From sequence record PV611058.1: a DNA stretch of 64,000 bases; one strand, 5' to 3'. The first letter of the stretch is position 1; every line of letters starts with the position of its first letter. Below the pieces are notes generated by a model, which was not told the origin of the DNA, ran no database searches, and was given only the letters and a program-made list of their open reading frames with translations. Position numbers and translations under genes: made by a program. Positions 1 through 64,000 of the stretch are shown here, one piece after another.

Positions 1-300
1 GCTTCTACTGCTGCTGTAGGTGGCACTTGGACACCAGATGGTACTACTAACGTATATCGCTTAACTCTTGACCAAAGTGTTACAATGGATTCCATCGCGG
101 GTCTAATTGGTAGTGGTCAAGCATGTTCAGTGTATATCTATGTAACTCCATCTGTTGCTGATACTACTTTCACCTTCGGTGGTGCATACTCTGTAGTTTC
201 TGGTACAGTAAGTGCTGTAGTTGGTCAAACAAGTATTATCCAAGTAATCTATGATGGTTTCAGTACTGTGTTTGATACCTTCGTTGCACAACGTGTATAA
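1..300 (+). CDS. 3' end of a fibre-like virion protein (5' part outside the window), paralog of the C-terminal domain of 450..6170
   Basis: Frame 1 is open from base 1 (ASTAAVGGTWTPDGTTNVYRLTLDQ...IIQVIYDGFSTVFDTFVAQRV). It aligns by eye with the last ~100 aa of 450..6170 (GTWTPDGTSNVYFITLDQ...IYQVIYDGVSPVTDLFIAQRTA). Confidence 0.8.
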   Translation, partial: ASTAAVGGTWTPDGTTNVYRLTLDQSVTMDSIAGLIGSGQACSVYIYVTPSVADTTFTFGGAYSVVSGTVSAVVGQTSIIQVIYDGFSTVFDTFVAQRV

Positions 301-318
301 CATTTTAAATTAATAATT

Positions 319-348
319 AAAGCCAACTATTTTAGTTGGCTTTTTCTT
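319..348 (+). terminator. Rho-independent terminator
   Basis: AAGCCAACTA-TTT-TAGTTGGCTT stem followed by a T-run. Confidence 0.8.
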
Positions 349-449
349 TTGTATTAGATAATAGTGTTTTTGTGAATTAAACTAAATATAAGTATATTAA
401 CAAAAGATGGGTTATGAATATATAGTTCATCGTTATAGGAGGGGACTCT

Positions 450-3400
450 ATGTACTCGATTAAAACGGATCTTGATGTATCTGGTAATTCCACGGTAGGT
501 AAGGATCTTTTGGTCAAAGGTAATGCAGTATTCAGTAATGACCTAACGGTTAATGGGGAAGTGTCTTTTGCTAACGCAGTATTCACTGCAATTACCGCTG
601 GTTCTGTGAATGTCACAGGTGCATTGGATGTTGCTGGTAAGGCAACCTTATCCGGTGGTGCTGATGTTTCAGGTGCTGCGACATTTGCAGGAAACATTAC
701 TGCTGCTGACGGCACAACTGCAAAATTTGATAACTTAGAAGCTAATTCAGGATCATTTAATTCTGTTGAATCAACTGATATTACTTCAACTGGCACAGCA
801 ACTTTTAAAGATGTAAACATTTCTGGTACACTTGGTGGTACTTTTAATCTTTCTGATATTAATGCTACAACACTTAATGTGTCTGGTGCTTCAGCACTAA
901 CTGGTTCAGTCACATTGGGTGCAAATATCACTGGTCTTGCAAGTACTGCAAACTTCCGTGATATTCGTATCGGGCCTAATGAAGCAGGTCAAGCATATAG
1001 ACTAAACTTTGGTTACACCGTTCCAGGACAACGACCAACCGTTCTTCTACAGAACGAAGTTCAATCCGAACTAATGTCACCAGCTAAGTTGAATGTTCTA
1101 CAAACTGCAACATTTGGTGATTCTTCACTTTCAACTTACGGTATTACAGGTAATGGTTTAAACAAATTAGATTATGTAACTATTTCTGGTAACGCAATTC
1201 AATCACCAACCACTCCTTTACTTGAAGTAACTAAAGGTAAAACTAAAGTTGTTGATTTAGAAGTAACTGGTATAGCAACTATTCCTAATATCGAAAGTTC
1301 TGGTACTGCAAACTTTAACAACATCAACGTATCTGGAACTATTGGTGGTAGTTTTGATTTAGATGATATACAAGCAACAACATTATCAGTATCCGGTGCT
1401 TCAGCACTAACTGGTGCAGTTACATTGGGTGCAAACATCACTGGTCTAGCAAGTACTGCAACATTCAAAGCAATCAATTTGGGTCAAAATACCGCTGATG
1501 CTAACGTTAAGCTAGGTTTTGCATATACTGCACCTAGTGCACGTCCAACAGTCTTGTTAGCAAACGAAGTTCAATCTGAACTAATGTCTCCTGCTAAGTT
1601 GAACGTTCTACAAACTGCAACCTTCGGTTCTGCTGCACTATCTACCTATGGTATTACTGGTAATGGTCTAAACAAATTAGATTATCTAACAATCACTGGT
1701 AACGCAACACAAAACCCTGCAACTCCACAACTTCAAGTTGGTGGTAAAGCAATTCTTAATGATGTTGAATTTACAGGTACTGTAACTGGCCTAACTGTTG
1801 ATGTGAGTGGACAAGATCTAACTCCTAAATCAGTAGTTGCTGCTGAAGCAATGAAAGGTCAAACTCTTGAATCAGTTGGTCAAACAACTGTAGGTTCATC
1901 TCTACAAGTTGGTGGTACTGCAACTGTTACTGGTGCATTATCTGCTGCCTCTGGTACTTTCAGTGGTGATGTTAGTGGTTCTAAAGGTATCTTCAGTGGT
2001 AGCGTATCCGGTACAAGTGCAACCTTTACTGGGGATGTTAGCGGTGATAACGCAACCTTTAGTGGCGATTTATCTGCTGTAGCTGGTACTTTCAGTGGTG
2101 ATGTAACCGTAACTGGTCAAACAATCACGGTTAAAGACTTGGTAGTAACTGGAACTTCAACTGGTGTAACTGCAATCGCTGACGTTGACGGTCTTGATAT
2201 TGCTCCAAACAAAGTTGATGTTACAACAACTCTATCTGTTGCTGGTGAATCAACTCTTGCTGGTGTTACAGCAACTTCAATCAATAGTACTGGTGCAATT
2301 GCAGGTACTGCAATTTCTGGCTCTACTATTACAGCAACTGGTGAAATTTCTGGTGCATCATCTGTAGTAACTGGTCTTTCTAAATCTGGTAGCGTTGAAA
2401 CTGGTGCTCTAAAGGCATCTTCTGTTGAAACTGCAATCATTAGTAACACTGCTGGTGTGTCAATAACAAACAACACTTCAATTGCAGGTAATCTATCTGT
2501 GACTGGGACTGTTACCCCTGGTGCAATTGACCTAAGTACTACTGATATTGATGCTAAGTCTCTAACAACTACTGAAGGTGCTAACATTGGTGGTGACCTA
2601 GTTGTTGCAGGTACAGTTGATCTAAGTGCTGCTGACGTTGCTGTTAAATCTCTAACCAGTTCTGGTGCAGTTATTAGTTCTGAAGGTACTGTAAGTAGTG
2701 TTCTACCTAAACTTTCCAGTACTGAAGCTAATATTACCACAGTAACTGCAACCACTGCAAATGCTACCACACTAAATGTAACTGGTACATCAACTCTAGC
2801 TGGTGTTAACGCTTCTGGTGCTATTACTTCTGCAACTAACATTACCGCTACTGGTGTATTAAAAGGTGCATCTGTTGAAACTGCGTCAATCAGCAATGCT
2901 GATGGTGTAGCAATTAACAATAACACTACAATCACTGGTAATTTGGACGTATCTGGGACATTGACCCCTGGTGCAATTGACCTAAGCACCACTGATATTA
3001 GTTCTAAGTCTCTAACCACAACTGAAGGTGCTACAATTGGTGGCGATCTTGTGGTAGCAGGTACTGTTGACCTAAGTGCTGCTGATGTGTCTGTGAAATC
3101 TCTTGCAAGTGCAGAGACAATTACAAGTGCTGGTGTTATTACAGTTTCGGATACAGTGAATTCTAGCACTCTACCAAAACTAATTACTACTGATGCAACT
3201 ATTGGTGCTGTCCATGCAGCTACTATTGAAACAACTGGTTCAAGCACACTAAAACAAGTATCTGCTACTGAAGTAACAGCTACAAGTATTGTACTAAATT
3301 CAGTTGGTGAAGGTTTACGTGTTGACAATGATGCAAACATTAATGGTATATTAAGTGTTAATAATATTACTTCTACCAATGATACTATTGCAATTGCGAA

Positions 3401-6170
3401 AAGTGCAGCTATTACTGGTGATCTGACCGTATCTGGTACTGTTACTCCTGGTGCAATTGACCTAAGTACTACCGATATTAGTTCTAAATCCCTAAGTACT
3501 ACTGAAGGTGCTACAATTGGTGGTGACCTAGTTGTTAATGGTTCAATTGATTTAAGTTCTTCCAATGTTTCAGCAATTACCCTTGCTAGTTCTGGTAATA
3601 CTACCGTTGGTGGTAACCTAGTACTAACAACTGGTGTTGTAACTGGCAGCCCATCTGTATCTGGTAACCTTTCAGTTGCAGGTACTGCGGCAGTAACTGG
3701 TGCAACTACCCTAACTGATATCGTAAATATCGGTAAGAAAGTAACTGTAAGCACTGGTGGTATTCAAGTAGTTGCAGGTGGTATTAATACCGACGCTATA
3801 TTAGTATCCGGTGATACAACTTTAAACAACACTACTGTAAACACTACCTTAAATGTAACTGGTCAAAGTACAGTTGCTGCACTAAGTGCTGCATCTTTGA
3901 ATGTATCTGGTGATAGTACTGTTCAAAAACTAACAGTTGAAGGTGAATTGGTTCCACAAGGTGGTATCGACCTAACTGGTGCAGATATTTCTGCTAATAG
4001 TCTTGCAACTGCTTCAACAATCACTGCAACTGGACTAAGCACACTAAGTGGTGGTGTAAGTACTACTAATGTTACTGCATCTGGTACAGTGAATGCTGGT
4101 AGTTTGGATGTTACTAACAACGCAACCGTTGGTGGTACATTAGGTGTAACTGGTGCATTAACTTCTGGTCCATTGAGTGTAACAGGTATTGCGAATATTA
4201 CTGGTGTAACAACTGTTGGTTCATTGGTTTCCGGTGCTGTATCTGGTAGTACTGGTACATTTAGTTCAACATTAGGTGTAACTGGTGCAGCTACATTTGA
4301 CAATGACGTAACTGTTGAAGGTGTATTCACCCCAGCAGGTGGTTTAGACCTAACAACTTCTGATATTACAGCTAAGAGTTTGTCAGTATCTGAAACTATT
4401 CACTCTGATGGTGCAGCTTCCTTTGGTGGTAACACAACAGTAGGTGGTACATTGGGTGTAACTGGTGCAGTAACTGCTCCATCGGCAACCCTAAGCGGTA
4501 CTGGTACTGCACTAGCAGTAACTAATAATGCAACTATTGGTGGTACATTGGGTGTAACTGGTCAAGCATCACTTGGTTCTATAGTAACTTCTGGTGTATC
4601 TGCAACAAGTGGCTCTTTCAGCACTACTCTTGGCGTTACTGGTGCTGCGACATTTGGAAACGATGTAACTGTAGTTGGAACACTAACTCCTGGTAGCTTA
4701 GATCTAACTGGTGCAGATATCTCTGCTAAAACACTAACTCTATCTGAAACATTAAATGCGACAGGTAATACTACCCTTGGTGGAACATTAGGTGTAACTG
4801 GTTTAGCAACAATTGGTGGAACACTAACGTCTGGTGCAGTAACTGCTCCATCTGCAACCTTGAATGGTTCAGGAACTGGTCTAGCAGTAACTAACAACGC
4901 AACCGTTGGTGGTACATTAGGTGTAGTTGGTCAAACAACACTAGGTTCTGTTAAAACTGGTGCAACTCTAACAGTTGGTACACCATTAGGTGAGCAGCCT
5001 GAAACTGTACAGATTATGCCAGACACTTATATTGCTGGTAAACTACGTGTTGAGGGTGGTATTAACGCAGATATCGATGTTGGTGGACAAACACTAGAAC
5101 CGTTTGCAGTAATAGCATCTGATTCTTTATCTTCTGCTGGTAATATTACTGCTGGTGCAGCAATTATTTCAAGTTCTGCAACAATTGGTGAAGTCGGTTC
5201 ACAAAACAACAACCTAATCGTTAATGGTAACGTTGTAAACAACGGTAACTTCACTGTTACTGGCGTACTAAATGCACAATTGAACCAAGCAGATTCCGAT
5301 GTAGCTGTTAAGTCTTTGACTGCAACTAACAACGTTGCGGCTGGAACCACATTAAGTGCAGGTACTGCAATTACTGCTGGTACTTCCATCACTGCAACTG
5401 GATTACTTAAAGGTAATACTTTAGAAGTTACTACTACTGGTTCATTTGGTGGTGCAGTAACTATGTCAAGTGGTGCAAACATCACTGGTACAGTGGGTAT
5501 TACTGCTGGTGACCTAACAGTAGGTGGTAATATCTCTGCAACTGGGACTGCTGGATTCGGTGCAACAACCGTTTCTACAATTACAACATCAGGTTTGGCT
5601 ACACTTGCAAGTACATCCGTTACTGGTAACGCAACAGTAGGTGGAACACTAGCAGTAACAGGATCACTAACTGCGAATGGTAACGTAACATTAGGTGACG
5701 CAGCGGCTGACGTTCTAACCGTTAATGCAACTTCATCATTTAAAGAAAATGCTGTGTTTGATAAGGCAGTAACAGTAACTGGTGAACTAACCACTACTAA
5801 TGCTAACTTAACTACTACAACAGTAACTACCAAAAAGTATGATGTAATCCCAACTCAAGTTACATCATCAGTAATTGCTCCAACCGGAACATGGACTCCA
5901 GATGGTACAAGTAACGTGTACTTCATCACTCTAGACCAAGATACCACGTTGGCTCCAATTACTGGCCTAATTGGTGGTGGTAAAGCTGCATCAGTATACA
6001 TCTATGTTAAACAAGATACAACTGGTAACAGAAACTTTACAACTGATGGTACTTATGCTGTTGTTGATGGTGAACTAAACAAAACTGCTGGTAGCGTAAC
6101 CATTTACCAAGTAATTTATGATGGTGTAAGTCCAGTTACTGATTTGTTCATTGCACAACGTACTGCTTAA
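450..6170 (+). CDS. Giant (1906 aa) T/G/S/V/A-rich repetitive virion fibre protein, probably beta-rich
   Basis: Long ORF with strong AGGAGG RBS and TAAATA at 383-388. Low-complexity beta-strand repeats (GGTLGVTG, TPGAIDLSTTDI, KSL) and a conserved C-terminal domain shared with the upstream gene. Confidence 0.75.
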   Translation: MYSIKTDLDVSGNSTVGKDLLVKGNAVFSNDLTVNGEVSFANAVFTAITAGSVNVTGALDVAGKATLSGGADVSGAATFAGNITAADGTTAKFDNLEANSGSFNSVESTDITSTGTATFKDVNISGTLGGTFNLSDINATTLNVSGASALTGSVTLGANITGLASTANFRDIRIGPNEAGQAYRLNFGYTVPGQRPTVLLQNEVQSELMSPAKLNVLQTATFGDSSLSTYGITGNGLNKLDYVTISGNAIQSPTTPLLEVTKGKTKVVDLEVTGIATIPNIESSGTANFNNINVSGTIGGSFDLDDIQATTLSVSGASALTGAVTLGANITGLASTATFKAINLGQNTADANVKLGFAYTAPSARPTVLLANEVQSELMSPAKLNVLQTATFGSAALSTYGITGNGLNKLDYLTITGNATQNPATPQLQVGGKAILNDVEFTGTVTGLTVDVSGQDLTPKSVVAAEAMKGQTLESVGQTTVGSSLQVGGTATVTGALSAASGTFSGDVSGSKGIFSGSVSGTSATFTGDVSGDNATFSGDLSAVAGTFSGDVTVTGQTITVKDLVVTGTSTGVTAIADVDGLDIAPNKVDVTTTLSVAGESTLAGVTATSINSTGAIAGTAISGSTITATGEISGASSVVTGLSKSGSVETGALKASSVETAIISNTAGVSITNNTSIAGNLSVTGTVTPGAIDLSTTDIDAKSLTTTEGANIGGDLVVAGTVDLSAADVAVKSLTSSGAVISSEGTVSSVLPKLSSTEANITTVTATTANATTLNVTGTSTLAGVNASGAITSATNITATGVLKGASVETASISNADGVAINNNTTITGNLDVSGTLTPGAIDLSTTDISSKSLTTTEGATIGGDLVVAGTVDLSAADVSVKSLASAETITSAGVITVSDTVNSSTLPKLITTDATIGAVHAATIETTGSSTLKQVSATEVTATSIVLNSVGEGLRVDNDANINGILSVNNITSTNDTIAIAKSAAITGDLTVSGTVTPGAIDLSTTDISSKSLSTTEGATIGGDLVVNGSIDLSSSNVSAITLASSGNTTVGGNLVLTTGVVTGSPSVSGNLSVAGTAAVTGATTLTDIVNIGKKVTVSTGGIQVVAGGINTDAILVSGDTTLNNTTVNTTLNVTGQSTVAALSAASLNVSGDSTVQKLTVEGELVPQGGIDLTGADISANSLATASTITATGLSTLSGGVSTTNVTASGTVNAGSLDVTNNATVGGTLGVTGALTSGPLSVTGIANITGVTTVGSLVSGAVSGSTGTFSSTLGVTGAATFDNDVTVEGVFTPAGGLDLTTSDITAKSLSVSETIHSDGAASFGGNTTVGGTLGVTGAVTAPSATLSGTGTALAVTNNATIGGTLGVTGQASLGSIVTSGVSATSGSFSTTLGVTGAATFGNDVTVVGTLTPGSLDLTGADISAKTLTLSETLNATGNTTLGGTLGVTGLATIGGTLTSGAVTAPSATLNGSGTGLAVTNNATVGGTLGVVGQTTLGSVKTGATLTVGTPLGEQPETVQIMPDTYIAGKLRVEGGINADIDVGGQTLEPFAVIASDSLSSAGNITAGAAIISSSATIGEVGSQNNNLIVNGNVVNNGNFTVTGVLNAQLNQADSDVAVKSLTATNNVAAGTTLSAGTAITAGTSITATGLLKGNTLEVTTTGSFGGAVTMSSGANITGTVGITAGDLTVGGNISATGTAGFGATTVSTITTSGLATLASTSVTGNATVGGTLAVTGSLTANGNVTLGDAAADVLTVNATSSFKENAVFDKAVTVTGELTTTNANLTTTTVTTKKYDVIPTQVTSSVIAPTGTWTPDGTSNVYFITLDQDTTLAPITGLIGGGKAASVYIYVKQDTTGNRNFTTDGTYAVVDGELNKTAGSVTIYQVIYDGVSPVTDLFIAQRTA
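760..1780 (+). repeat. Tandem ~510-nt (170-aa) duplication inside the giant fibre gene
   Basis: GGTGCTTCAGCACTAACTGGT... and AACGAAGTTCAATC.GAACTAATGTC.CC.GCTAAGTTGAA... each recur at an offset of 510 nt; boundaries approximate. Confidence 0.85.
2500..3540 (+). repeat. Three copies of the TPGAIDLSTTDI..KSL.TTEGA.IGGDLVV module
   Basis: CCTGGTGCAATTGACCTAAG at about 2517, 2967 and 3447. Confidence 0.85.
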
Positions 6171-6180
6171 TAATTATAAT

Positions 6181-6213
6181 AAAAAAAACGGTGTCATCAA
6201 TTATGGTGACACC
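6181..6213. terminator. Hairpin/terminator
   Basis: A-run then GGTGTCATCA-ATTAT-GGTGACACC. Confidence 0.5.
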
Positions 6214-6236
6214 ATCTTAACAAGTGAGGTAGTTAT

Positions 6237-7016
6237 ATGTTTACATATGTAAAAGGTAGTTCTAAAGAAAATTATGAATTGGGTAACATCATCTCCAACC
6301 CAGTTGGTGTTAAGGGTTTAAAAGAACGCCCTGGGGCAACTCCAGATGATGAACAAACATATCGTTATTTGTACAGTGATATTCGTGCACTTTATGGTAT
6401 TTCAAGTAAAGATGGTTCTGAAATTGAACCTAATAACGCTGTTCGCAAAGAAGAGGGTTTCTGGTGGTTGGAATATAAGAATGTTGGTAATGTGAACGCA
6501 ATTAATGAGAATTTGGAATATATTAAACTACAAGATAGTAATCAACCAGTCATCACATTCTTAGAAGAAGCAGAAGGTGAATATAAAGAGTTAACAGTAC
6601 TGAAAACTTATAATTATGTTGATATGGATATTGCAGCAGTTAAATCTGATCTGAAAGCACGCACAGTATCATCTCGTAGTGATCGTATTAATGCTGGTTA
6701 TATGTTTAACGGTCATCGTTATAGTACTGATCTAGCTGGTCGTCAAATGCTTCTTAATTATTATACACAAGTAACTTCCGGTTCAGATAGCGTTTCGATT
6801 TTCCTTGATGACGCAATTGTAAAACTATCTGCTGCTGAAATGACTCAACTATACACTGAAGCATTTGCTATGGTTGAATCCCTATTTGCAGAGTGTAATA
6901 AGCAATGTGCTGACATTGATGCAGTTCCTGATGCTGATGAAGATGCAATTTATAAAGCACAACAGGCGGCTGTATGGGTATATGAAGGTATTGATATTCC
7001 TGAGCGTACTCGTTAA
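6237..7016 (+). CDS. DUF4376-like protein, putative fibre assembly protein/chaperone
   Basis: C-terminal half (SRSDRINAGYMFNGHRYSTDLAGRQML...LSAAEMTQL...) resembles DUF4376; lies directly after a fibre gene. Confidence 0.55.
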   Translation: MFTYVKGSSKENYELGNIISNPVGVKGLKERPGATPDDEQTYRYLYSDIRALYGISSKDGSEIEPNNAVRKEEGFWWLEYKNVGNVNAINENLEYIKLQDSNQPVITFLEEAEGEYKELTVLKTYNYVDMDIAAVKSDLKARTVSSRSDRINAGYMFNGHRYSTDLAGRQMLLNYYTQVTSGSDSVSIFLDDAIVKLSAAEMTQLYTEAFAMVESLFAECNKQCADIDAVPDADEDAIYKAQQAAVWVYEGIDIPERTR

Positions 7017-7030
7017 TTTATATTTTTTTA

Positions 7031-7058
7031 AAGGTCAACTATGGTTGGCCTTTTCTTT
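7031..7058 (+). terminator. Rho-independent terminator
   Basis: AAGGTCAAC-TATG-GTTGGCCTT followed by a T-rich tail. Confidence 0.7.
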
Positions 7059-7107
7059 TATCTAAAATAAATACTTAATATATAATCTATTCTGAGGAAA
7101 TATTTAA

Positions 7108-9072
7108 ATGAGTATAAATCGAATTAGAGGTGATGGTGGTGTAATTATAGATAGTCAGGCATTTCTAGAATTACCTAAAGCACCGACTAAAGAAACCGCT
7201 GATGTGGTTAGATCAGGGATGATTAGATACAATAAAGGATGGAAAGCATTTGAAGGTGTACTAGACTTTGAAGATGGTTCAATGGCATATCGACGTTTTG
7301 CAAACCTAGATGCAAACGGTAAACTTCTTACTTCCCAATTACCAGATTCAGTAACTAGTGGTTTACAATTTGTTGGTACATATAATCCCATCCCAGATGA
7401 TATCGATCCACCTTTAGCACAAACTCCACTACCAGCACCATCACCATCGCTTAATGGTGATTATTATGTCGTTCGTGGTATAATGGATGCCGCACAAGCA
7501 CATTATGAAGCAAATAATCCACAAACAAGTCCTGTTACATTTACACCTACAAATCCAACTGGACAAGGTAATTGGATTGAAATTTTATATTATGTTGACT
7601 CTAATCCAAATATATCTGGTGCTAAACTAGTAACATACGCTTTTGCTAGAATTATTACTGCATCTATTCCCAGTACTGGACATGATGGCCTTGAAAATTT
7701 AGCAACAGATACTGACTTGACCAAACCATTTGCATCTGGTGTTCCAATGAACCAAACTGCACTTTCAGATGGTGATTGGATTATTATAACTGAAGATAAG
7801 AATATACGTCTTCGTCAGTCAAGAACAAGCATTTCCGCTGCTTCAGTATTATATGACAATACTGTAATGATTGCAAATCATCGCCAATTTAGAACAAACG
7901 CAGGGACCGTTCAAACATCCATAGATAACGTTGTGATTGAGTGTTTACGTAGAACTGGCGATTCCATGTATAATGATGGAACAGACGGCTCTGGGCGTTT
8001 TGGGGTGGTGTATGGCAGTGCAGCAGCACCAGCATTGACATTTAATAATAATCCGTTTGACCCAACGAACAACCCAGGTAATGACCCAACTAAGTGGTCC
8101 GATGCTAATACTGGTATATTCCATCCAGCAGATGATGCAATTGGTTTTACAACAGCCGGAACTGAGCGTGTTAGAATTAATAATGGAACATTAACATTAT
8201 TCCAAACTACCGCTACACCAGCAGCTACACCAGTAATACGTTTTGATAATGCATCAAACACAAACGTAGGGATAAGTGCAAGTAGTAATATTATTTCTTT
8301 AAGTTCAATGAATAAAGTTCAAGTTGAATTTAAAAATGGTGAATCACATTTTCATGGAAATATTATTGTAGATGGATCAACATCACTAACTGGTGATTTA
8401 AACGCAGGTAACATCACTGCCAGCGGGAATTTAGTTGTTAAAGGTAATACAACACTAGGAGACACTACTGGTGACACTATTACAGTTAATGGTGTTAGTA
8501 CTTATAATGCAAATACTAATTTCAATGGAACTAATAACAAATTCAAAAACATAAACTTACTAGAGAATGGTGTATTCACATTAGAAAGTACTACAAACCA
8601 AAGTGATATAAAACTACTTGGTGCAGACTTACGTTTCACTATGGGAAGTTATGCTGATGTAAGTATATATGATAACGGTGTTATTCGTACTCGTTTCAAC
8701 CGATATGGTATTCAATTACCAGTACTGGCTACAATTGATAACTCAGTTGGTGTTGATGGTATGATTGCATACTCAAATACCGAACGTACATCGATGCAGA
8801 AGGTCCAAGGACAATGGGTTCCAATTGGTTCTGGTTCTGTACGTACTGACCCGTTTACTGCGTCAGCGTGGGTTTTAAACGGCTCATATTACACATTAAC
8901 AGTAACTGCTAGTAACATAGTAACTGCTGAAATTCAAGAACTCGTAAGTACTGGTGTTTACACTCGTGTTGAAGTTGATAGTGTTACATTCAATGGAACA
9001 AGCGTAGTGTTCAGTATTCCTGCAACTCCTGATGTGAGATTTGCCGGACGTACACTGGTTACATTAAGATAA
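7108..9072 (+). CDS. Virion structural / fibre-associated protein (654 aa)
   Basis: GMIRYN and GMIAYS motifs typical of myophage fibre/baseplate proteins, beta-repeat segment (GDLNAGNITASGNLVVKGN), TAAATA at 7068-7073. Confidence 0.55.
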   Translation: MSINRIRGDGGVIIDSQAFLELPKAPTKETADVVRSGMIRYNKGWKAFEGVLDFEDGSMAYRRFANLDANGKLLTSQLPDSVTSGLQFVGTYNPIPDDIDPPLAQTPLPAPSPSLNGDYYVVRGIMDAAQAHYEANNPQTSPVTFTPTNPTGQGNWIEILYYVDSNPNISGAKLVTYAFARIITASIPSTGHDGLENLATDTDLTKPFASGVPMNQTALSDGDWIIITEDKNIRLRQSRTSISAASVLYDNTVMIANHRQFRTNAGTVQTSIDNVVIECLRRTGDSMYNDGTDGSGRFGVVYGSAAAPALTFNNNPFDPTNNPGNDPTKWSDANTGIFHPADDAIGFTTAGTERVRINNGTLTLFQTTATPAATPVIRFDNASNTNVGISASSNIISLSSMNKVQVEFKNGESHFHGNIIVDGSTSLTGDLNAGNITASGNLVVKGNTTLGDTTGDTITVNGVSTYNANTNFNGTNNKFKNINLLENGVFTLESTTNQSDIKLLGADLRFTMGSYADVSIYDNGVIRTRFNRYGIQLPVLATIDNSVGVDGMIAYSNTERTSMQKVQGQWVPIGSGSVRTDPFTASAWVLNGSYYTLTVTASNIVTAEIQELVSTGVYTRVEVDSVTFNGTSVVFSIPATPDVRFAGRTLVTLR

Positions 9073-9074
9073 TA

Positions 9075-9106
9075 AAAAAGGGAGACATAAGTCTCCCTTT
9101 TCTTTT
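9075..9106. terminator. Bidirectional terminator between convergent genes
   Basis: AAAAAAGGGAGAC-ATAA-GTCTCCCTTTT with A and T runs on both sides. Confidence 0.85.
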
Positions 9107-10034
9107 ATACAGCCATTGGTGCTTTGATTGTTGGCATTGGATTGTAATTAACTAATTTGAAAGAATCCATAGTGAAATCTTCAATATCAGTAATAGTAGG
9201 ATCTAGCCATAATTCTGGTAATGTACGTGGTTCACGTTGGAGTTGCTCTTTTACTTGTTCAATATGGTTTTGGTAGATATGGCAGTCGCCACCATTCCAA
9301 ATAAATTCACCAACATCTAACCCTGTAATTTGTGCAATCATATGAGTTAGTAGTGAGTAACTACTAATATTAAATGGCACACCAAGGAATAGATCAGCAC
9401 TACGTTGATGAAGAATACAACTTAGTTTACCCTGTACAACACAAAACTGCACAAAGCTATGACAGGGTGGCAAAGTCATAGCATCAAGCTCACCAACGTT
9501 CCATGCACTTAGAATGTGACGACGACCGTATGGATCAGTATTGATACCTTCAATAACTTGTTTTAGCTGGTCAGTTACACGACGCATAATAACACCATGT
9601 GAACCAGTATAATCAATAACTTTATACCCTTTATCTTTTAGTTCTTGAATTTCTTCAGTACTGGAACTGAATTTATAATCTTCCCATTCACGCCATTGTT
9701 TACCATAAACTGGGCCAAGCTCACCATCAGAATACCCAAGGCTTACACCTTGATTAAGGTAGTTGTCTGTCCAAATTGTTTTCTTTTCTACATCACGTGT
9801 CCCGTGTAAAATTTCACACAGACGACGCTCATCGTGAGAACCTTCAATAAACCATAACAATTCTGAAGTCATTGCTTTCCAAGCCAAACGTTTAGTAGTT
9901 ACTGCTGGGAAACCTTCTTTTAGGTCAAAACGCATTTGTTGTCCGATTAGCTTGATAGTGCCAACACCAGTACGATCAACGCTTTCGACACCTTGATCCA
10001 GAATTCTTTGATATAGTTCTTGTAGTTGTTTCAT
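9105..10034 (-). CDS. thyA: Thymidylate synthase (uninterrupted, no intron)
   Basis: DRTGVGT, ELLWFIEG, LGPVYGKQWR, LPPCH, QRSADLFLGVPFN, GDCHIY motifs. Confidence 0.98.
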   Translation of the reverse strand: MKQLQELYQRILDQGVESVDRTGVGTIKLIGQQMRFDLKEGFPAVTTKRLAWKAMTSELLWFIEGSHDERRLCEILHGTRDVEKKTIWTDNYLNQGVSLGYSDGELGPVYGKQWREWEDYKFSSSTEEIQELKDKGYKVIDYTGSHGVIMRRVTDQLKQVIEGINTDPYGRRHILSAWNVGELDAMTLPPCHSFVQFCVVQGKLSCILHQRSADLFLGVPFNISSYSLLTHMIAQITGLDVGEFIWNGGDCHIYQNHIEQVKEQLQREPRTLPELWLDPTITDIEDFTMDSFKLVNYNPMPTIKAPMAV

Positions 10035-10627
10035 TTTACGTCCTTGAAAAATGTAATAAAGTGTTCCATGTGTTTTTGTGTAGCATTACGTGAACCAATC
10101 CCAGTCCAATTACCGTGTGGTGCTGGTATTGAGAATGTTTCAGTAAACTCTTTCAGTACTGTATCATAATAAAATACAGAGCGAGTGTTCATATCATAAC
10201 AATATATTTCTGGATTGTCAACTGAATCCATATACATCTGTACGGCCCATGCAGTTCCACCTGAAACTTGCGTAGGTGATGTAATATTTGCAATACAATA
10301 TACTCTTTTTGTATTAAGTATCTGGTAACTATTCCTTGCAAGTAAGTTATATACATACGAACCAGGCTTAGGAACTTTACGGCGTAAAGAGTAACATGCA
10401 ATGTTTAATTGTTTTAATATTGAACTATCACAAAGGATATTGGGTGGAATTTCTAATATAGTATTTTCATCTACGCTGCTTTGGTGACCCTTGAATGAAA
10501 AATTTATTACTTCAAATCCATTGTCTTTTGCATAGATAGAAAAAAGGCGGTCAGCACCTGCTGCCCCGCCACTGAAACATACATTAGATAAACCATTGAT
10601 TGCTTCATCTAATTCTATTTTATTCAT
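10031..10627 (-). CDS. SLOG/DprA-like Rossmann-fold protein
   Basis: SGGAAGAD glycine loop, SGGTAWA and GIGSR motifs. Confidence 0.55.
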   Translation of the reverse strand: MNKIELDEAINGLSNVCFSGGAAGADRLFSIYAKDNGFEVINFSFKGHQSSVDENTILEIPPNILCDSSILKQLNIACYSLRRKVPKPGSYVYNLLARNSYQILNTKRVYCIANITSPTQVSGGTAWAVQMYMDSVDNPEIYCYDMNTRSVFYYDTVLKEFTETFSIPAPHGNWTGIGSRNATQKHMEHFITFFKDVK

Positions 10628-10632
10628 TTATA

Positions 10633-11286
10633 TTATTTTGCTTTACGTTCTGCAAATGCCTGTTTAACTTTCTCAATTGCTTTGGTTTGTGAAATTCCTT
10701 CTGGGATTTCAATATAGAAAGTTTTGCTATCAGGTGCTACAGGTGTTGCTTGAACTTGTGGACGTAGAGATGGTTCTAAGTTGTAAGCACGTTCAAAGTG
10801 CTCTTTAGCCAACTGCTCATAACGTTGTGCATCTTTAAGTAGTTGCTCAACAATGGTAGCTTCTTCAACAGAAGTATCAACTTCTTGTGGCTTGAATGGG
10901 TTGTATTCTTTAACTTTACCATCTTCATGTTTTTTAGCATCATTATCATTGATTGCGTTGTTTAGAACATCAAGAGAAATCTTACTGTTTCCACCAACAT
11001 GCATATCAATATCACAAGTACGTGCACGACGCAAATGTTGTAGATTATGAAGAACATCTAGCATTTTGCGACCGTCTAGATGACCAATCTTATGCATAAC
11101 TTCCCACAAATCTACATTCGATTGACCTTGATTCATTACTAAATCTGCAACAGATTGAGCATATGCTTCAGGAAGTGAATCGCGATAAACAATGAGACAA
11201 TGTTCTGGATCATCAGGGAGTGAACGCCATACCACAAATACTCGTGAACCCGTATTACGTACTACACCAACGTGACGAATAGCCAT
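10633..11286 (-). CDS. Conserved hypothetical phage protein (217 aa)
   Basis: ORF with GGAG RBS, coding-like composition, compact packing. Confidence 0.7.
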   Translation of the reverse strand: MAIRHVGVVRNTGSRVFVVWRSLPDDPEHCLIVYRDSLPEAYAQSVADLVMNQGQSNVDLWEVMHKIGHLDGRKMLDVLHNLQHLRRARTCDIDMHVGGNSKISLDVLNNAINDNDAKKHEDGKVKEYNPFKPQEVDTSVEEATIVEQLLKDAQRYEQLAKEHFERAYNLEPSLRPQVQATPVAPDSKTFYIEIPEGISQTKAIEKVKQAFAERKAK

Positions 11287-11288
11287 TA

Positions 11289-11519
11289 TTATTCTCCTTT
11301 ATTTTGTTCAGCAGCAGCTTGTGCAGCATCAGCTTCTTCTTGTGCTTTGATATCTTCGAGTGCAGAGTTGGCAAACTCAACAAACTTAGATACGACTGGA
11401 GCAACATCAACAAGTTCTTCGACTTTAAATGAATTACGAGCCACAGCAGCTTCCATGATTTTAGCAGCGTTGATTAGGTCGATTAGTGTTAGTTGAATTT
11501 TTTCTGGTTCTTGTTCCAT
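11289..11519 (-). CDS. Small acidic hypothetical protein (76 aa, MEQEPEK...)
   Basis: Start reassigned from 11618 to the ATG at 11519, which has a GGAGAG RBS. Confidence 0.65.
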   Translation of the reverse strand: MEQEPEKIQLTLIDLINAAKIMEAAVARNSFKVEELVDVAPVVSKFVEFANSALEDIKAQEEADAAQAAAEQNKGE

Positions 11520-11585
11520 TTTAATACTCTCCATGTATGTTGTTACAAATATAATTATATCACCTTTTTCCAAGCTGTCCCGCTG

Positions 11586-11616
11586 AAAAAAGTAGAGAAC
11601 GGAATTTTCCGTTCTC
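11586..11616 (-). terminator. Rho-independent terminator
   Basis: GAGAACGGA-ATTT-TCCGTTCTC with a T-run on the - strand. Confidence 0.7.
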
Positions 11617-11628
11617 ATTATTTAGTAC

Positions 11629-13038
11629 TTAGCTACGTTGACGCTTTTTGTCAGCTTCATATTCGTAGTGTACAGTTTCGCCAAATGGTGCTTGTTTGTT
11701 AGGATTACTGTGGATAACAAACAGTGTCTTACAGTAATCAGGATCACCCCATGACTGCCACGGCTCACCATCGGTAAACATAATAAGCTGTTTAGGCTTA
11801 TAGTTGTCATGCTTCATATGAACCCATACTGCTTCAAAGTCAGTACCACCACCACCTTTCACTGGATATTCGAGAATCTTACTCTCTTCACCAGTTTTGT
11901 AATCTTTCACAGTATAAACTTCAGTATCGAACGTCATGATACGGATTTTAAATTGTTTAAACTGCTTAGTGATACCCAGTACTTCACTGATGAAATCACG
12001 GAGCATATCTTCAGAGATAGAACCGGATGCATCTAGTGCAATTGCAATATCAATATCATCATCTGGTTTCATACCAGGGAAGATTGGATTCCCGTAGAAT
12101 GAACCAGAACTACCAAAACCAGCACCCCATGAACGACGATTAGGATTTTGATAAGTTGCATCAGACTTCAACCAGCTACGTAGTGTGCGGTGAAGTTTAG
12201 AACGCCAGTCAATCTTAGGTTCTTTGAAGTTGTTAATCATACGTGCGATTTCAGCAGGAGTACCACCTGCACGAGCAGCATTCATCATTGCTGTTTTGAA
12301 ATCATCCATATAATCACGTTTTTGTTTATCACTTGAACCACCTTCTTGACCTTCTTGTGGAACGTCATGTTGGTCGATTGTTGTACCTTTGCCTTTACCA
12401 TCTTTGATATCACCAAAAGTACCGCGTGATTTACCTTCACCCTCACCACTACCAGCCTGTGGATTTCCTTCACCTTCTCCGTCTTGGTCCTGCTTATCTT
12501 CTTCTTCGAGAATGTTATAAATCTCTTCAGCAGTCATACCATCGTACTTTTTATCGTACAGCCATTGGCTTTGAATTTTACCAATTTTATCACGAACAAG
12601 AATCTGGTTAATTGCATAGTCAGCAGCACGGTTATAACGCTGCGGGTCACGCATACCACGACGCAAGAAGTGGTCATATGCACAGTGAAGAATTTCATGA
12701 CAAATAACTGCAATCAGGTTTTCATCAGTCAAACCTTCTGTCATTTCTTTAAGTTGTTCTTCAGTTACTTCAGGATGTTTCTCACGAATTGCTTCTTCGT
12801 ATGCTGACTTTTTGGATTGGTCCTGAATACCCATGATGAATTCTACGTTGTAGAATAAATGCTTACCATCTACAGCCAAAGTACGACACCATGTGTTGTT
12901 TGCAACTGGACGCAGACGAGAAGCCAGTACACCAAAGAATGGGAATGTTAGCATTAAAGATGTGCGAGCTAAGATCAGACGATCTTGACATTCTTTCTGG
13001 AGAGCCGGAGTAACATCACTGAAACGTTTATCTGACAT
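11629..13038 (-). CDS. Zincin-like metallopeptidase fused to vWA domain (DUF2201-type), MoxR partner
   Basis: HEILH (HExxH) in the N-terminal domain; MIDAS DASGS, GGGTDF and MFTDG in the C-terminal domain. Confidence 0.88.
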   Translation of the reverse strand: MSDKRFSDVTPALQKECQDRLILARTSLMLTFPFFGVLASRLRPVANNTWCRTLAVDGKHLFYNVEFIMGIQDQSKKSAYEEAIREKHPEVTEEQLKEMTEGLTDENLIAVICHEILHCAYDHFLRRGMRDPQRYNRAADYAINQILVRDKIGKIQSQWLYDKKYDGMTAEEIYNILEEEDKQDQDGEGEGNPQAGSGEGEGKSRGTFGDIKDGKGKGTTIDQHDVPQEGQEGGSSDKQKRDYMDDFKTAMMNAARAGGTPAEIARMINNFKEPKIDWRSKLHRTLRSWLKSDATYQNPNRRSWGAGFGSSGSFYGNPIFPGMKPDDDIDIAIALDASGSISEDMLRDFISEVLGITKQFKQFKIRIMTFDTEVYTVKDYKTGEESKILEYPVKGGGGTDFEAVWVHMKHDNYKPKQLIMFTDGEPWQSWGDPDYCKTLFVIHSNPNKQAPFGETVHYEYEADKKRQRS

Positions 13039-13063
13039 TTGTATTTCCTCGTTTAGTTAAGAT

Positions 13064-13090
13064 AAAAGAAGGATACCATGTGGTATCCTC
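13064..13090 (-). terminator. Hairpin terminator
   Basis: AAGGATACCA-TG-TGGTATCCT inverted repeat with A-run. Confidence 0.55.
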
Positions 13091-13113
13091 CTTGTCAACA
13101 CTCTTTTTAATTA

Positions 13114-14442: not shown

Positions 14443-14482
14443 GTATATTTTCCTTTTGTTGGATAAAATCGTTTAGGTTTCT

Positions 14483-14511
14483 ATTATAGCCAATCCGTGG
14501 GCAAAAGTAAA
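14483..14511 (-). promoter_or_regulatory. Sigma70-like promoter
   Basis: TTTACT-N17-TATAAT on the - strand upstream of the MoxR gene. Confidence 0.55.
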
Positions 14512-14613
14512 GGAACTGTGTTAAAAGAATTTTTAACTTATCAGTTCCTTTGTTACTTCATGAATCATCCGTGTATTTAAAAAGGCATTTCTCTTTGCCG
14601 TCTTGATGTGGTC

Positions 14614-14641
14614 ATTATATCACATCGTTCAGGCTTGTCAA
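14614..14641 (-). promoter_or_regulatory. Sigma70 consensus promoter (copy 1)
   Basis: TTGACA-N16-TATAAT with TG extended -10. Confidence 0.85.
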
Positions 14642-14705
14642 CAACTTTTTTATTTCTTTTTCAATCTCACATCTTGTGATTTTGAAAACTTGCTTCGTGG
14701 TGGTC

Positions 14706-14733: not shown

Positions 14734-14758
14734 CATCTTTTTTTCTTTATTTTCGAAG

Positions 14759-57262: not shown

Positions 57263-57484
57263 TTACATGTTATGATTTGGTATACAGTACACAAATACTA
57301 AATTGGAAAAGTGTTCAGTACTGGAATATTTTGCTAAATCTGTTATATGGAAGTAGACATCTTTGAAATTATCATTCTCAAATGTCGTTATTTGTAAACA
57401 GTGTGTGGGTCTGAAAATATAATAATAAAATATATCATCTTCAGCCACAACTGTATGGTTTTTGTAGCGTTCAATTTTTTTCAT
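57263..57484 (-). CDS. Hypothetical protein
   Basis: Start at MKKIER, coupled to the deaminase stop. Confidence 0.5.
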   Translation of the reverse strand: MKKIERYKNHTVVAEDDIFYYYIFRPTHCLQITTFENDNFKDVYFHITDLAKYSSTEHFSNLVFVYCIPNHNM

Positions 57485-57849
57485 GTGTGAATAATTTCTT
57501 TTACCCCATATTCCATAATTGCCAACGTACAAATCTCACAAGGCTTGGCAGGGACTGGAATACCATCTTTACTTACCCGTGCAATCAACAAAGTATGAAC
57601 TTCAGCACGAGAAGCCAGCAAACATGAGATTTCAGCATGAAGAAATTCACCTTGTGGACGACCAGCACGGATTGCAAAACCTTTCTGTACTGGGTGAGTA
57701 TGTGTGTAAGAATTAGTACGTGTTGCCAATACACGACCTTTCTTATCTAGTGCACGAGCAATCACACGATAACGTTTGTAGCTCCCCACTTGCTCGATTG
57801 GTGGCATCCGTCGCAATTCTTCAATTAGTTTCTCAAGTTTACGATTCAT
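57481..57849 (-). CDS. Zinc-dependent cytidine/nucleotide deaminase-like protein
   Basis: LHAE and KPCEIC motifs. Confidence 0.8.
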   Translation of the reverse strand: MNRKLEKLIEELRRMPPIEQVGSYKRYRVIARALDKKGRVLATRTNSYTHTHPVQKGFAIRAGRPQGEFLHAEISCLLASRAEVHTLLIARVSKDGIPVPAKPCEICTLAIMEYGVKEIIHT

Positions 57850-58460
57850 AAGTCTAAGTCTATACCCTTTTCAAATGATTTCTCTAGAACCCAAAGTTTA
57901 CATTCTTCACTCTCCAAATGCATCTTTGCCTCTTTCTGTTGTTCTATTGTACAAGACTTTATAAATTCACGCAAGGCTTCTATTGTACTTTTTATATTTT
58001 TTATGTCTTCCAGCATTGTTTCTTTGGCTTCAGCATCAATTACAGATGAACTCCACCCGTGACGTTCTTCCCAAATTGTTTTTGTTGAATTGTAAATTGA
58101 TGATGTAGAAATGACTGCATGGACCTTATTAAACGTATCGTCTGCTTCTTGTTGGGTGTAATCACCATAAGTGTTTAGCACATTTTTGTATAGTTCATCA
58201 ATTGCCTCATCATAAGTATCACCACCGCAATCTAACTCATAATCATGTGCTTGTACCCATTCATCATCTTGCTCAACGTACATAGGTGAGATGAATTCTA
58301 CCCAAAATTGTGTCTTTGTATTCAGAGCTTTAAATGATTCAATGCGGTTTGTGATTGGACACACATCATGTGGTTCGATATCAATCCTTGGGGGAACCAT
58401 ATCTCCGTTGATGAATTTAGGATGGCCCATAATCCACCAGTACTTTTCAGATGTAGTCAT
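57846..58460 (-). CDS. Hypothetical protein
   Basis: GGAG RBS; ELDCGGDTYDEAIDEL motif. Confidence 0.6.
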   Translation of the reverse strand: MTTSEKYWWIMGHPKFINGDMVPPRIDIEPHDVCPITNRIESFKALNTKTQFWVEFISPMYVEQDDEWVQAHDYELDCGGDTYDEAIDELYKNVLNTYGDYTQQEADDTFNKVHAVISTSSIYNSTKTIWEERHGWSSSVIDAEAKETMLEDIKNIKSTIEALREFIKSCTIEQQKEAKMHLESEECKLWVLEKSFEKGIDLDL

Positions 58461-58505
58461 TGTAATCTCCAATTAAAAAGTACTGCCACTATAACAGTAC
58501 TGATA

Positions 58506-62994: not shown

Positions 62995-63297
62995 TTACAT
63001 GCTCGGTTCGTATTCAACATAACATCTTGAACCACGAGCCTTTTCCTCCCAGCATTCCTGGTAAACTAGTTGACCAATTGATACTGGATCTCTTGATAAC
63101 CCATTACGAATTTCACCAGTACTGGTTTTATAAGTAAATGAGCATTTATTTTCATTACATTGACCTAATCCTATTACAGTCGCTGTATTGTAATGAATAT
63201 TGTAACGTTTAGTGTTCTCATGATATGAACTGAACCACAGAACACCTATACCTAATAGCGTTGTACAAATAAGACTCTTGATATGTGTTGAAATCAT
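62995..63297 (-). CDS. Membrane-anchored hypothetical protein
   Basis: N-terminal TM segment, paired cysteines. Confidence 0.55.
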   Translation of the reverse strand: MISTHIKSLICTTLLGIGVLWFSSYHENTKRYNIHYNTATVIGLGQCNENKCSFTYKTSTGEIRNGLSRDPVSIGQLVYQECWEEKARGSRCYVEYEPSM

Positions 63298-63614
63298 AGT
63301 GCATTAAATCCATTAGTTAAGTAAGTTTCAATATTAACTTTCCCTACTGGATTACTACTATGTACATAGTATTTAAATGGTTCTTTAATATTATGCTCAA
63401 ACATATAATCAATTAGAAATTTGGCAAAAGTGTATCCCGTTTTCTCATCTGTACTCAAGTCACCCAAGTCATGGTCAAATGAGACAAATGATGGAATTCC
63501 ATTTTTGATTACGTATTCACATGCACTTTCATAGTCACGACACAATACCATCTCTTGGTCAGGATAATATTTTTGATAATCACGAATATCATCCAAGAAC
63601 ATTGAGTACGACAT
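63294..63614 (-). CDS. Cyclic-phosphate-processing receiver-domain-like protein
   Basis: FLDDIR, SFDHDLG, TGYTFAKFL, HSSNPVG..NI. Confidence 0.75.
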   Translation of the reverse strand: MSYSMFLDDIRDYQKYYPDQEMVLCRDYESACEYVIKNGIPSFVSFDHDLGDLSTDEKTGYTFAKFLIDYMFEHNIKEPFKYYVHSSNPVGKVNIETYLTNGFNAL

Positions 63615-63623
63615 TTTAAACTC

Positions 63624-63938
63624 CTATAGATAGCTGATTAGTAAGTTTTCTTTTTGTACAAGATACTCTAATTCTTGTTTCGCAGTTCCGATGAAGTTCT
63701 GTGTCATAAGATTATTATATCCTGCTTCTCGATTTTGTCCCTTAGAATAACGTGAGATGTGACATAAATTTACACCAGCCACCTCTGCACTAGCATGTTT
63801 GCCATATGCATAATTATCACGAAGTTTTTTAAGTTCAGCATAAGTCATTTCATAACTATAGCTATGTGAGTGTCCCTCTGGAAACAATTCAAGTGATTTT
63901 AATGGAGACAGGCGACTTTTGTCAATGATATAGTTCAT
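63624..63938 (-). CDS. Hypothetical protein (104 aa)
   Basis: ORF track. Confidence 0.55.
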   Translation of the reverse strand: MNYIIDKSRLSPLKSLELFPEGHSHSYSYEMTYAELKKLRDNYAYGKHASAEVAGVNLCHISRYSKGQNREAGYNNLMTQNFIGTAKQELEYLVQKENLLISYL

Positions 63939-64000
63939 TTCTTCTTGAACTTCACGCTGTAACGCATCTTCTAATGACTTATCAGTACTTTCAACTGTTC

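Follow-up and report, generated by a model that had tools for sequence, protein, structure and literature searches.

The highly iterated palindrome HIP1 (GCGATCGC) of cyanobacteria is an 8-bp word that ranks among the commonest of its genomes, is over-represented tens of fold, and lies in every reading frame as well as between genes; its function has long been unknown. The conservation of HIP1 among related genomes exceeds the background level, evidence for selection over biased repair (PMC5861425), and HIP1 has the cognate methylases DmtA and DmtC, which recognize sub-sequences of it (PMC4390886, PMC13756078). Chi (GCTGGTGG) and the FtsK-orienting polar sequences (KOPS) are likewise short words whose high density is held by selection for DNA processing and not for coding, and they can serve as a mark of self. 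Here, we describe an iterated palindrome of a virus, i.e., AGTACT and its octamer form CAGTACTG, in a stretch of 64,000 bases (the window) that is identical to positions 230,001–294,000 of Escherichia phage WPEC3 (PV611058.1). WPEC3 is a jumbo myovirus with a genome of 384 kb and terminal repeats of ~22 kb each. An initial annotation of the window had proposed by eye that AGTACT is iterated from end to end and selected at the DNA level, as a signal resembling HIP1 or Chi.

Abundance and form of the word in the window

AGTACT occurs 152 times in the window, compared with 21.1 ± 4.3 (maximum 32) in dinucleotide-preserving shuffles, a 7.3-fold excess that makes it the top-frequency hexamer. The initial annotation had counted ~30 copies between 35.4 and 46.5 kb; there are exactly 30, with ~3.6 expected, and the seven coordinates that it gave as examples are all true sites. 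That is, its observation was understated. Over the whole WPEC3 genome, AGTACT is the commonest 6-mer, with 1,156 copies compared with 118 expected (9.8-fold) and a mean spacing of 332 bases.

The sites lie mainly within open reading frames (ORFs; 145 of 152, the remaining 7 being non-coding or partly coding), and coding DNA has 2.4 sites per kb compared with 2.2 per kb for non-coding DNA. Codon phases 0, 1, and 2 hold 79, 21, and 45 of the sites in coding sequences (CDSs), as had been claimed from the examples at 45404 (AGT ACT, Ser-Thr), 42746 (GTA CT, Val-Leu), and 44831 (CAG TAC T, Gln-Tyr), each of which was read correctly. When synonymous codons were shuffled within genes so that the proteins were kept, the CDSs held 39.5 ± 5.6 sites (maximum 55) compared with the 145 observed (z ~19), and shuffling the order of codons yielded 29.3. 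Protein composition is therefore insufficient as a cause. Ser-Thr dipeptides number 149 compared with 110 expected (Thr-Ser, 108), and AGTACT spells 79 of these 149 compared with 22.9 expected; the protein sequence bends toward AGTACT. GTAC itself is ~1.9-fold enriched in the window, and the other hexamers with a GTAC core (NGTACN) are not likewise enriched, with 0–45 copies each (GGTACC 0, CGTACG 0, TGTACA 28). Hence, neither of the two outcomes named beforehand as fatal to the claim, i.e., an observed/expected ratio (O/E) of ~1 after codon-preserving shuffling and equal enrichment of all GTAC-core hexamers, was obtained. The periodicity that had been suggested for inspection was not found; the spacing of sites in the window is near random (coefficient of variation 0.93, Kolmogorov–Smirnov p 0.52), with exponential gaps and mild under-dispersion at 2 kb. 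In addition, the sites showed no relation to position within genes, gene ends, gene class, length, or conservation, and their density is even across and within genes.

The octamer CAGTACTG is the commonest in the window, with 37 copies compared with 1.08 expected (34-fold); in CDSs, 35 copies compare with 3.06 ± 1.63 after synonymous shuffling, and genome-wide it is the commonest 8-mer (266 vs 5.6 expected, 47-fold). As the enrichment is graded from GTAC through AGTACT to CAGTACTG, the octamer is the best-defined unit, and forms flanked by A/T are weaker. Its flanks are symmetric: C before or G after is present in 48% of the sites of the window compared with 18% in the background, and G before in 7–8%. 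The same rule is common to three genera (C at −1 in 42–49%, G in 4–8%). The half-sites are strictly joined, since AGT directly followed by ACT occurs 152 times in the window and each spacer of one to eight bases 10–37 times; neither these spaced forms nor the reverse order (ACTAGT, 12 copies) was enriched.

The word stands out against a background of palindrome avoidance, a contrast that the initial annotation had expected of a phage. In the window, 26 of the 64 hexamer palindromes have no copy at all (summed expectation ~120), and these are 26 of the 32 with at least four G/C; GCGC is absent where 44 copies are expected, and GATC (O/E 0.60), CATG, CCGG, and GGCC have O/E values of 0.4–0.6. 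XacN1, GAP32, CBB, and PHB05 show the same pattern. AGTACT is the only strongly enriched palindrome in the window. The second most enriched, GATATC (33 vs 14.8), is also raised in phage XacN1 (~4-fold) and in two of three E. coli samples (~3-fold); therefore, it is a general feature unrelated to AGTACT.

The sites and the features that they form are as follows.

1–64000, no strand: dispersed AGTACT array, 152 sites, 2.4 per kb, with the starts given in the next three lines

AGTACT starts, part 1: 262, 942, 1452, 2286, 2535, 2718, 3465, 3495, 3620, 3915, 4059, 4248, 6596, 6723, 7672, 8497, 8587, 8721, 8947, 9657, 10155, 11624, 11978, 13149, 13232, 13979, 15110, 15278, 15740, 15903, 16652, 16798, 18037, 19902, 19960, 20440, 20707, 21260, 21385, 21525, 21892, 22203, 22416, 22964, 23451, 23709, 23808, 23847, 24354, 24877, 25845

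AGTACT starts, part 2: 26340, 26421, 26654, 28000, 28120, 28387, 28708, 28986, 30232, 30783, 30954, 30990, 31211, 31341, 31395, 32157, 32198, 32753, 32823, 33116, 34250, 34529, 34625, 34663, 35405, 35531, 36657, 37104, 37664, 37871, 38358, 38690, 39045, 39422, 39683, 39978, 40155, 40220, 40838, 41054, 41520, 41863, 42360, 42501, 42560, 42746, 43715, 44382, 44566, 44831, 45093, 45404, 45753, 46422

AGTACT starts, part 3: 47356, 47383, 48425, 48529, 48847, 49111, 49399, 49435, 49510, 49889, 50070, 51225, 51417, 51689, 51755, 52133, 52652, 52860, 53550, 54427, 54559, 55172, 55335, 55474, 55978, 56011, 56333, 57217, 57317, 58439, 58479, 58496, 58764, 58916, 59283, 59596, 60486, 60504, 60595, 60722, 61993, 62056, 62533, 62718, 62836, 63118, 63984

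261–63124: the 37 full CAGTACTG, each from its start to start + 7; starts 261, 2717, 6595, 7671, 8720, 9656, 10154, 13231, 15109, 15902, 18036, 19959, 21259, 23807, 26420, 32197, 32822, 35404, 37663, 38689, 39421, 41519, 41862, 49888, 53549, 54558, 55334, 55473, 57316, 58495, 58915, 59595, 60503, 60594, 62055, 62532, 63117

58479–58501: paired AGTACT sites at a distance of 17 bases, within the intergenic gap of 33 bases that lies upstream of the minus-strand ORF 57846–58472; the second is a full CAGTACTG (58495–58502)

11624–11629: AGTACT at the stop codon of the minus-strand ORF 11629–13038, adjoining a terminator-like hairpin

34250–34255: intergenic AGTACT

41054–41059: intergenic AGTACT

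57317–57322: intergenic AGTACT, a full CAGTACTG at 57316–57323

4254–6595: longest run without AGTACT in the window (2.3 kb), within the distal portion of a 1,906-aa tail-fibre gene; the maximum gap of 2,348 bases is not significant (random expectation, mean 2,335)

Distribution, conservation, and genome context

WPEC3 is 98–99.6% identical to fEgEco12, EC.P1, and CMSTMSU and shares 76–85% identity with the Asteriusvirus type phages 121Q, PBECO4, and phAPEC6. AGTACT is 5–10-fold enriched in every relative sampled: 48 and 105 copies were counted at two loci of 121Q, 84 in 45 kb of the Salmonella phage Munch, 104 in 41 kb of Hallingskeid, 84 in 40 kb of GAP32, 95 in 40 kb of RaK2, 51 in CBB (6.4 expected), and 159 in XaC1, which has a Xanthomonas host (15 expected). 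The enriched cultured members span seven host genera, i.e., Escherichia, Salmonella, Klebsiella, Cronobacter, Pectobacterium, Erwinia, and Xanthomonas. Copies of AGTACT were missing or no more frequent than by chance in the sister jumbo phage XacN1 (0 vs ~19 expected), Atu_ph07, the rV5-like PHB05 (0 vs 9), and T4 (4 vs 5.8), and E. coli K-12 has 5 copies in 150 kb compared with 13.3 expected, which is ~90 times sparser than the phage. When IMG/VR was scanned with a tail-sheath profile, 56 metagenomic loci were obtained; O/E ranged from 5.2 to 8.3 in the 16 whose sheath identity was 68% or higher and from 0 to 3.4 in the 40 at or below 52%. The trait is a sharp synapomorphy of the RaK2-like jumbo myoviruses (Asteriusvirus, Mimasvirus, Alcyoneusvirus, and relatives) and was shown to be independent of the host. 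The sharp edge of the clade together with retention on seven host genera indicates a phage-encoded cause. No paper linking AGTACT to these phages was found in the literature searched. In practice, an AGTACT O/E of at least 5 can assign metagenomic contigs to the clade (16/16 in, 0/40 out).

Two further observations concern the lineages around the clade. The nearest outgroup loci (L036, L037, L072, L073, and L075, with 47–48% sheath identity) have GTAC at an O/E of 1.4–1.7 and AGTACT not enriched, and this mild excess of GTAC may be a precursor state of the trait. An alternative iterated palindrome was sought in the sister lineage XacN1 and none was found; the raised GATATC was set aside because E. 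coli shares it.

The conservation of individual sites was assessed in the alignment with 121Q (83% identity). Among 140 alignable sites, 84 are kept compared with 57.2 expected for phase-matched hexamers (p = 4e-6). As 121Q carries 130 sites, the density is at equilibrium with ~40% turnover. Cores with both C/G flanks were kept in 85% of cases (29/34), those with one flank in 55%, and those with none in 46%, with a baseline of 41% (Fisher p = 5e-4); purifying selection is strongest on the full octamer. The single changes between species are diverse, with a T/A transversion at position 3 observed 15 times, G/A at position 2 11 times, and A/T at position 1 8 times; the commonest one-step partner is AGTTCT/AGAACT, a change of the Ser/Thr type. 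None of the one-off neighbours of AGTACT is depleted in the window (AGTATT/AATACT O/E 1.17). The synonymous shuffles and the flank-graded conservation bear out the proposal of selection on the DNA itself; that is, the enrichment reflects positive or purifying selection at the level of DNA and is not a by-product of protein composition, and AGTACT is very probably a functional word. Selection maintains ~3 copies per kb over the full length of the chromosome, a density paid for in synonymous and even in conservative amino-acid changes.

The same genome contains an exception. Two AGTACT-free stretches, of 8.4 kb (344,988–353,380) and 6.0 kb (355,782–361,759), lie to the left of the right terminal repeat of WPEC3. 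The 8.4-kb zone (locus L008, 4988–13380) consists of small minus-strand genes, and on its top strand AGTACT, AGTAC, and AGTACA are all at 0, and TGTACT, with 47 copies, is the commonest hexamer. T precedes 73 of the 84 GTAC on that strand and A precedes none (0/84). The sense strand accordingly reads (C)AGTACA, in all three codon phases, with 48 copies compared with 18.7 ± 3.6 after synonymous shuffling. An assembly artefact was considered as the source of the zone and rejected, since it is shared by the independently sequenced fEgEco12 (42 of 47 TGTACT positions identical) and by 121Q (82% identity, sharp edges). The homologues of the zone lie at L083 9001–17317 and L084 ~9000–16500, and CBB is without it. 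Within one genome, therefore, selection favours the palindrome over most of the length and opposes it in one segment, where it keeps a one-strand variant at the same density. As the genome that carries the array also holds this conserved AGTACT-free zone, a genome-wide mutational cause is ruled out, and as the variant is kept on one strand only, a direction-sensitive process is involved at least there. The 6-kb stretch (L008 15782–21759), which abuts the right terminal repeat, comprises ~25 tandem ORFs of ~70–85 aa and has neither AGTACT nor an excess of GTAC (14 vs 14 expected); 121Q is alike.

The density of AGTACT is 6.3–6.5 per kb in both copies of the terminal repeat and 1.4–3.7 per kb elsewhere in WPEC3, and it is doubled in the terminal repeats of both Asteriusvirus and Mimasvirus. 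In the early region of the WPEC3 repeat, the intergenic density reaches 12.4/kb, and nearly every small early gene has a sigma70-like promoter. At 18 of 33 early promoters, AGTACT starts 27 bases upstream of TATAAT, in the form AGTACTTGCA, and overlaps the upstream edge of the −35 element; at 12 of 33, it starts 7 bases upstream of TATAAT, in the form AGTACTGTATAAT, and abuts the −10 element. Such fixed placement was not found in the window, where 145 of the 152 sites are intragenic and evenly spread. A clade-wide promoter role was rejected; the 18 published RpoD-like promoters of CBB are without AGTACT, and the placement at early promoters is therefore lineage-specific. In WPEC3 1–22,000, the top strand bears 10 copies of E. 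coli Chi written as CCACCAGC, and 2 copies face the opposite way, where 0.11 would be expected for each. With the prevailing orientation, RecBCD that enters from the left end of the genome would be stopped. Because genuine oriented Chi is already in the terminal repeat, a RecBCD-type role for AGTACT is disfavoured. At the boundary of the repeat, a 2-kb non-coding stretch (WPEC3 20,821–22,805) holds 22 AGTACT, repeated longer palindromes of the types TTCAGTACTGAA(T) and TTCAGTACTGAAT, direct repeats, and iterons of the type TAGCCGT/CCATCCAG. This stretch may serve as an origin, for packaging, or as an injection-stop region.

The window is 95% coding, nearly entirely on the minus strand, and has a GC content of 36.5%. 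Its genes include those for tail-fibre, tail-tube, and sheath proteins, thymidylate synthase, NrdD/G, and a PhoH-PIN protein, together with numerous small ORFs of unknown function. The words CTGGTG, ACTGGT, TACTGG, and CTGGTA are 4–7-fold over-represented. As 43 of the 55 CTGGTG lie within two plus-strand tail-fibre genes (450–9072), this excess reflects repeated Gly/Thr-rich peptide motifs and not Chi, and the repetition of such words in these genes partly explains the excess of the neighbour GGTACT. To the right of the window, the Sir2 region of WPEC3 (295,157–295,832; locus L001 38051–38803) contains five G or C runs of 70–78 bases and one of 11; the annotation there is broken into tiny ORFs, and the record is labelled "partial genome". 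These runs are probably an assembly or sequencing artefact, and because of them GGGGGGGG is the third commonest octamer of the record.

A proposed reader for the word and competing explanations

The explanation that we favour, with a probability of about 0.5, is that AGTACT acts in cis as a word peculiar to the clade, a phage "HIP", which a factor encoded by the phage reads, and that the density of its sites is what selection acts on. A factor encoded by the clade would recognize the word, most simply as a symmetric (homodimeric) protein that binds duplex DNA. Such a symmetric reader is favoured by the palindromy, the strict geometry of the half-sites, the footprint of 8 bp, and the more than additive effect of the two flanks. 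As the phage chromosome has ~90 times more sites per kb than that of the host, a process coupled to the reader would be confined to phage DNA; compaction or organization, protection, phage-specific transcription, replication, and packaging are candidates. In Asteriusvirus-like phages, the word would also be built into early sigma70-type promoters, where its occupancy next to the −35 and −10 elements would gate early transcription. That a protein reader exists, that it is symmetric, and which process it serves are our inferences from these patterns. The lineage-specific outer flanks may reflect co-evolution of the specificity of the reader. In this respect, CAGTACTG was counted 34 times in Hallingskeid and 26 times in RaK2, and GAP32 and CBB use both the CAGTACTG and AAGTACTT forms.

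Self-marking would be the most economical purpose, and the 90-fold contrast in density with the host makes it plausible. More tentatively, CAGTACTG could be a viral "self" code, by which a clade protein tells phage DNA (~3 sites/kb) from that of the host (~0.03/kb) and so confines a genome-wide process to the former, for instance immunity to a phage nuclease, transcription or replication licensing specific to the phage, or packaging. The TGTACT zone would then be a built-in polarity or escape region.

Several results weigh against a symmetric reader common to the clade. To a purely symmetric reader of duplex DNA, TGTACT and AGTACA are one and the same; what functions could instead be (C)AGTAC, read on a single strand and placed economically on both by means of the palindrome. 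The outer flanks drift between lineages while the hexamer stays constant, as in Munch, which has 13 AAGTACTT and 2 CAGTACTG, and the promoter placement does not extend to CBB. In addition, Pfam scans of 20 window and candidate proteins revealed no sequence-specific DNA binder, and the HTH_37 protein of CBB, its one annotated small helix-turn-helix regulator, has no homologue in WPEC3 and was rejected as a candidate reader. The minus-strand ORF 39617–40057 of the window is annotated in relatives as a starvation-inducible DNA-binding protein, its sole match being DUF5856; it is possibly a Dps-like DNA binder, and no test ties it to AGTACT.

The search for methyltransferases and DNA-binding proteins that the initial annotation had advised was productive in part: the clade encodes two DNA methyltransferases, and no enzyme or binder specific to AGTACT was identified. 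The C5-methyltransferase (286 aa, PF00145) is nearest to DNMT3 catalytic domains and has a short target-recognition domain like that of DNMT3. It has a 50%-identical homologue in PHB05, which has 0 AGTACT. The second enzyme belongs to the Dam family PF05869 and is common to the clade including XaC1 (50% identity); no counterpart was found among the similar-sized small methyltransferase ORFs compared in XacN1 and PHB05. Characterized members of PF05869 are GATC enzymes. Bisulfite data for RaK2 indicate CpG methylation (PMC3622015), and as AGTACT contains no CpG, a link between the word and the CpG-type C5 enzyme is unsupported; that enzyme was rejected as the reader, also in view of its homologue in AGTACT-free PHB05. 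The DNA of fEgEco12 was cut as predicted by ten enzymes, ScaI not among them (PMC13070987).

An epigenetic mark, in which a phage methyltransferase or other base-modifying enzyme targets AGTACT and the modified word marks self or serves a methyl-dependent function, nevertheless deserves weighing. The PF05869 enzyme has the distribution just described, the low O/E of GATC in the window is unlike the prediction for a protective GATC methylase, and a mollivirus methylates AGTACT, so that viral methyltransferases of this specificity exist. A genome with 1,156 copies of a word that is rare in E. coli and absent from the other large phages sampled would gain from protection, and HIP1 offers a parallel through its link to the orphan methylases DmtA and DmtC. 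However, the C5 enzyme points to CpG and the known relatives of the second enzyme to GATC; protection explains tolerance (O/E ~1) and not a 10–50-fold enrichment; graded flanks and flank-dependent conservation are atypical of an enzyme with a strict hexamer site; and the deamination neighbour AGTATT/AATACT is neither depleted nor inflated. We consider this explanation improbable. A word read by a polar enzyme, such as a priming site for a primase, a nicking site, or a Chi- or KOPS-like signal for a phage helicase-nuclease or translocase, would mean that the palindrome puts (C)AGTAC on both strands at the lowest cost. The zone in which the word is kept only on the sense strand (AGTACA 47), conserved in fEgEco12 and 121Q, demands a direction-sensitive process; the doubled density in the terminal repeats of two genera is in line with such a word, and a site as long as a hexamer needs enrichment to recur every few hundred bases. 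Against this, the markedly better conservation of octamers with two flanks than of those with one (85% vs 55%) suggests that both halves act together, half-sites at other spacings or in reverse order are not enriched, oriented host Chi in the terminal repeat already covers a RecBCD-type role, CBB lacks the polar zone, and no precedent was found in the literature searched. We regard a polar word as unlikely, yet as a serious rival that the one-strand zone keeps in play.

Three remaining explanations fare far worse. A neutral drive, i.e., biased mismatch repair of the very-short-patch type or context-dependent mutation that creates AGTACT without function, would suit the graded enrichment and the mildly raised counts of some one-off neighbours, and for HIP1, too, a neutral origin of its abundance through biased repair has been discussed. 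A very-short-patch-type drive was rejected and would not fit, because no specific neighbour is depleted and lineage-specific sites are gained and lost by many routes; moreover, conservation depends on flanks outside the hexamer, and the 8.4-kb zone stays at zero in three independently sequenced phages despite 47 one-step precursors. A neutral drive is thus largely refuted, and we hold it to be very unlikely. In a host-factor view, the word is a site for a host protein that it recruits or titrates, such as the nucleoid-occlusion factor SlmA; this view derives from the 12-bp SlmA site (GTGAGTACTCAC), which is centred on AGTACT. SlmA needs G1, T2, and a purine at position 3, where the phage word prefers C and has G in 4–8% of sites; no match to the SlmA-binding sequence (SBS; GTRAGYRCTYAC) was found in the window or the 27-kb early region, and the trait persists in XaC1, which infects Xanthomonas. 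Hijacking of SlmA was rejected on the grounds of wrong flanks and missing matches, and a host-factor site in general is hardly credible. Finally, AGT, ACT, and GTA are frequent codons and the phage carries tRNA-Ser and tRNA-Thr genes, as would suit a by-product of codon usage, dipeptide content, or repeated protein motifs. The synonymous and codon-order shuffles (39.5 and 29.3 vs 145 observed), the presence of the word in all three phases and in non-coding DNA, and its uniform density across and within genes refute this reading, which retains practically no probability.

Comparison with known DNA words

The phage word shares shortness and selected density with Chi and KOPS. These are asymmetric and strand-skewed, whereas the phage word is palindromic over most of the genome and only the 8.4-kb TGTACT zone is polar. 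The Chi-like role raised by the initial annotation is unlikely, as the word is a palindrome and the phage separately carries real Chi, with 10 oriented copies in the terminal repeat. The DNA uptake sequences (DUS) of Neisseria and uptake signal sequences (USS) of Haemophilus resemble it in occurring at about one or more copies per kb, in being lineage-specific, and in lying within coding sequence, and a likeness may also be drawn to their marking of self DNA for a protein reader. However, they are non-palindromic 9–12-mers read by competence proteins, and nothing ties the phage word to DNA uptake. Nucleoid-occlusion sites, i.e., the SBS of SlmA and the Noc-binding sequence, are palindromic, read by dimers, and dispersed over the chromosome, and the SBS has the same AGTACT core; they number tens and not a thousand and belong to a host system and not to the phage. 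The SBS consensus GT-R-AG-Y/R-CT-Y-AC, in which G1, T2, A4, and G5 are required, had no match in the window or L012. ScaI-type sites and the methylation site of the mollivirus are the same hexamer. Restriction-modification sites are usually avoided or neutral in phages, whereas AGTACT is enriched 10-fold, and restriction-modification would be expected to involve strict, ungraded recognition, whereas the phage word shows a graded, flank-dependent preference.

The analogy with HIP1 drawn by the initial annotation is apt, since over-representation, independence of reading frame, and conservation between species are common to both. The phage word differs in belonging to a virus and not to a cell, in its other, AT-rich sequence, and in that no cognate methylase was found for it. 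Unlike HIP1, it coexists with extreme avoidance of other palindromes and with an exclusion zone, in the same genome, that holds a one-strand variant. A periodicity of 10–90 kb has been reported for HIP1; the local spacing of the phage word is random, and a genome of 384 kb is too short for that scale. Large virulent phages had been expected only to lose palindromes, and these results overturn that view. If the word is a mark of self, it would represent a new route to self/non-self discrimination for viruses without wholesale DNA modification, and if CAGTACTG is a self code, this palindrome would be the first of the highly iterated kind whose reader and phenotype are tractable. HIPs have been known in cyanobacteria for thirty years without a settled function; here, such a word occurs in an easily grown virus of E. 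coli, with a small genome, a sharp clade boundary, and an internal control in the 8.4-kb zone where the word is forbidden.

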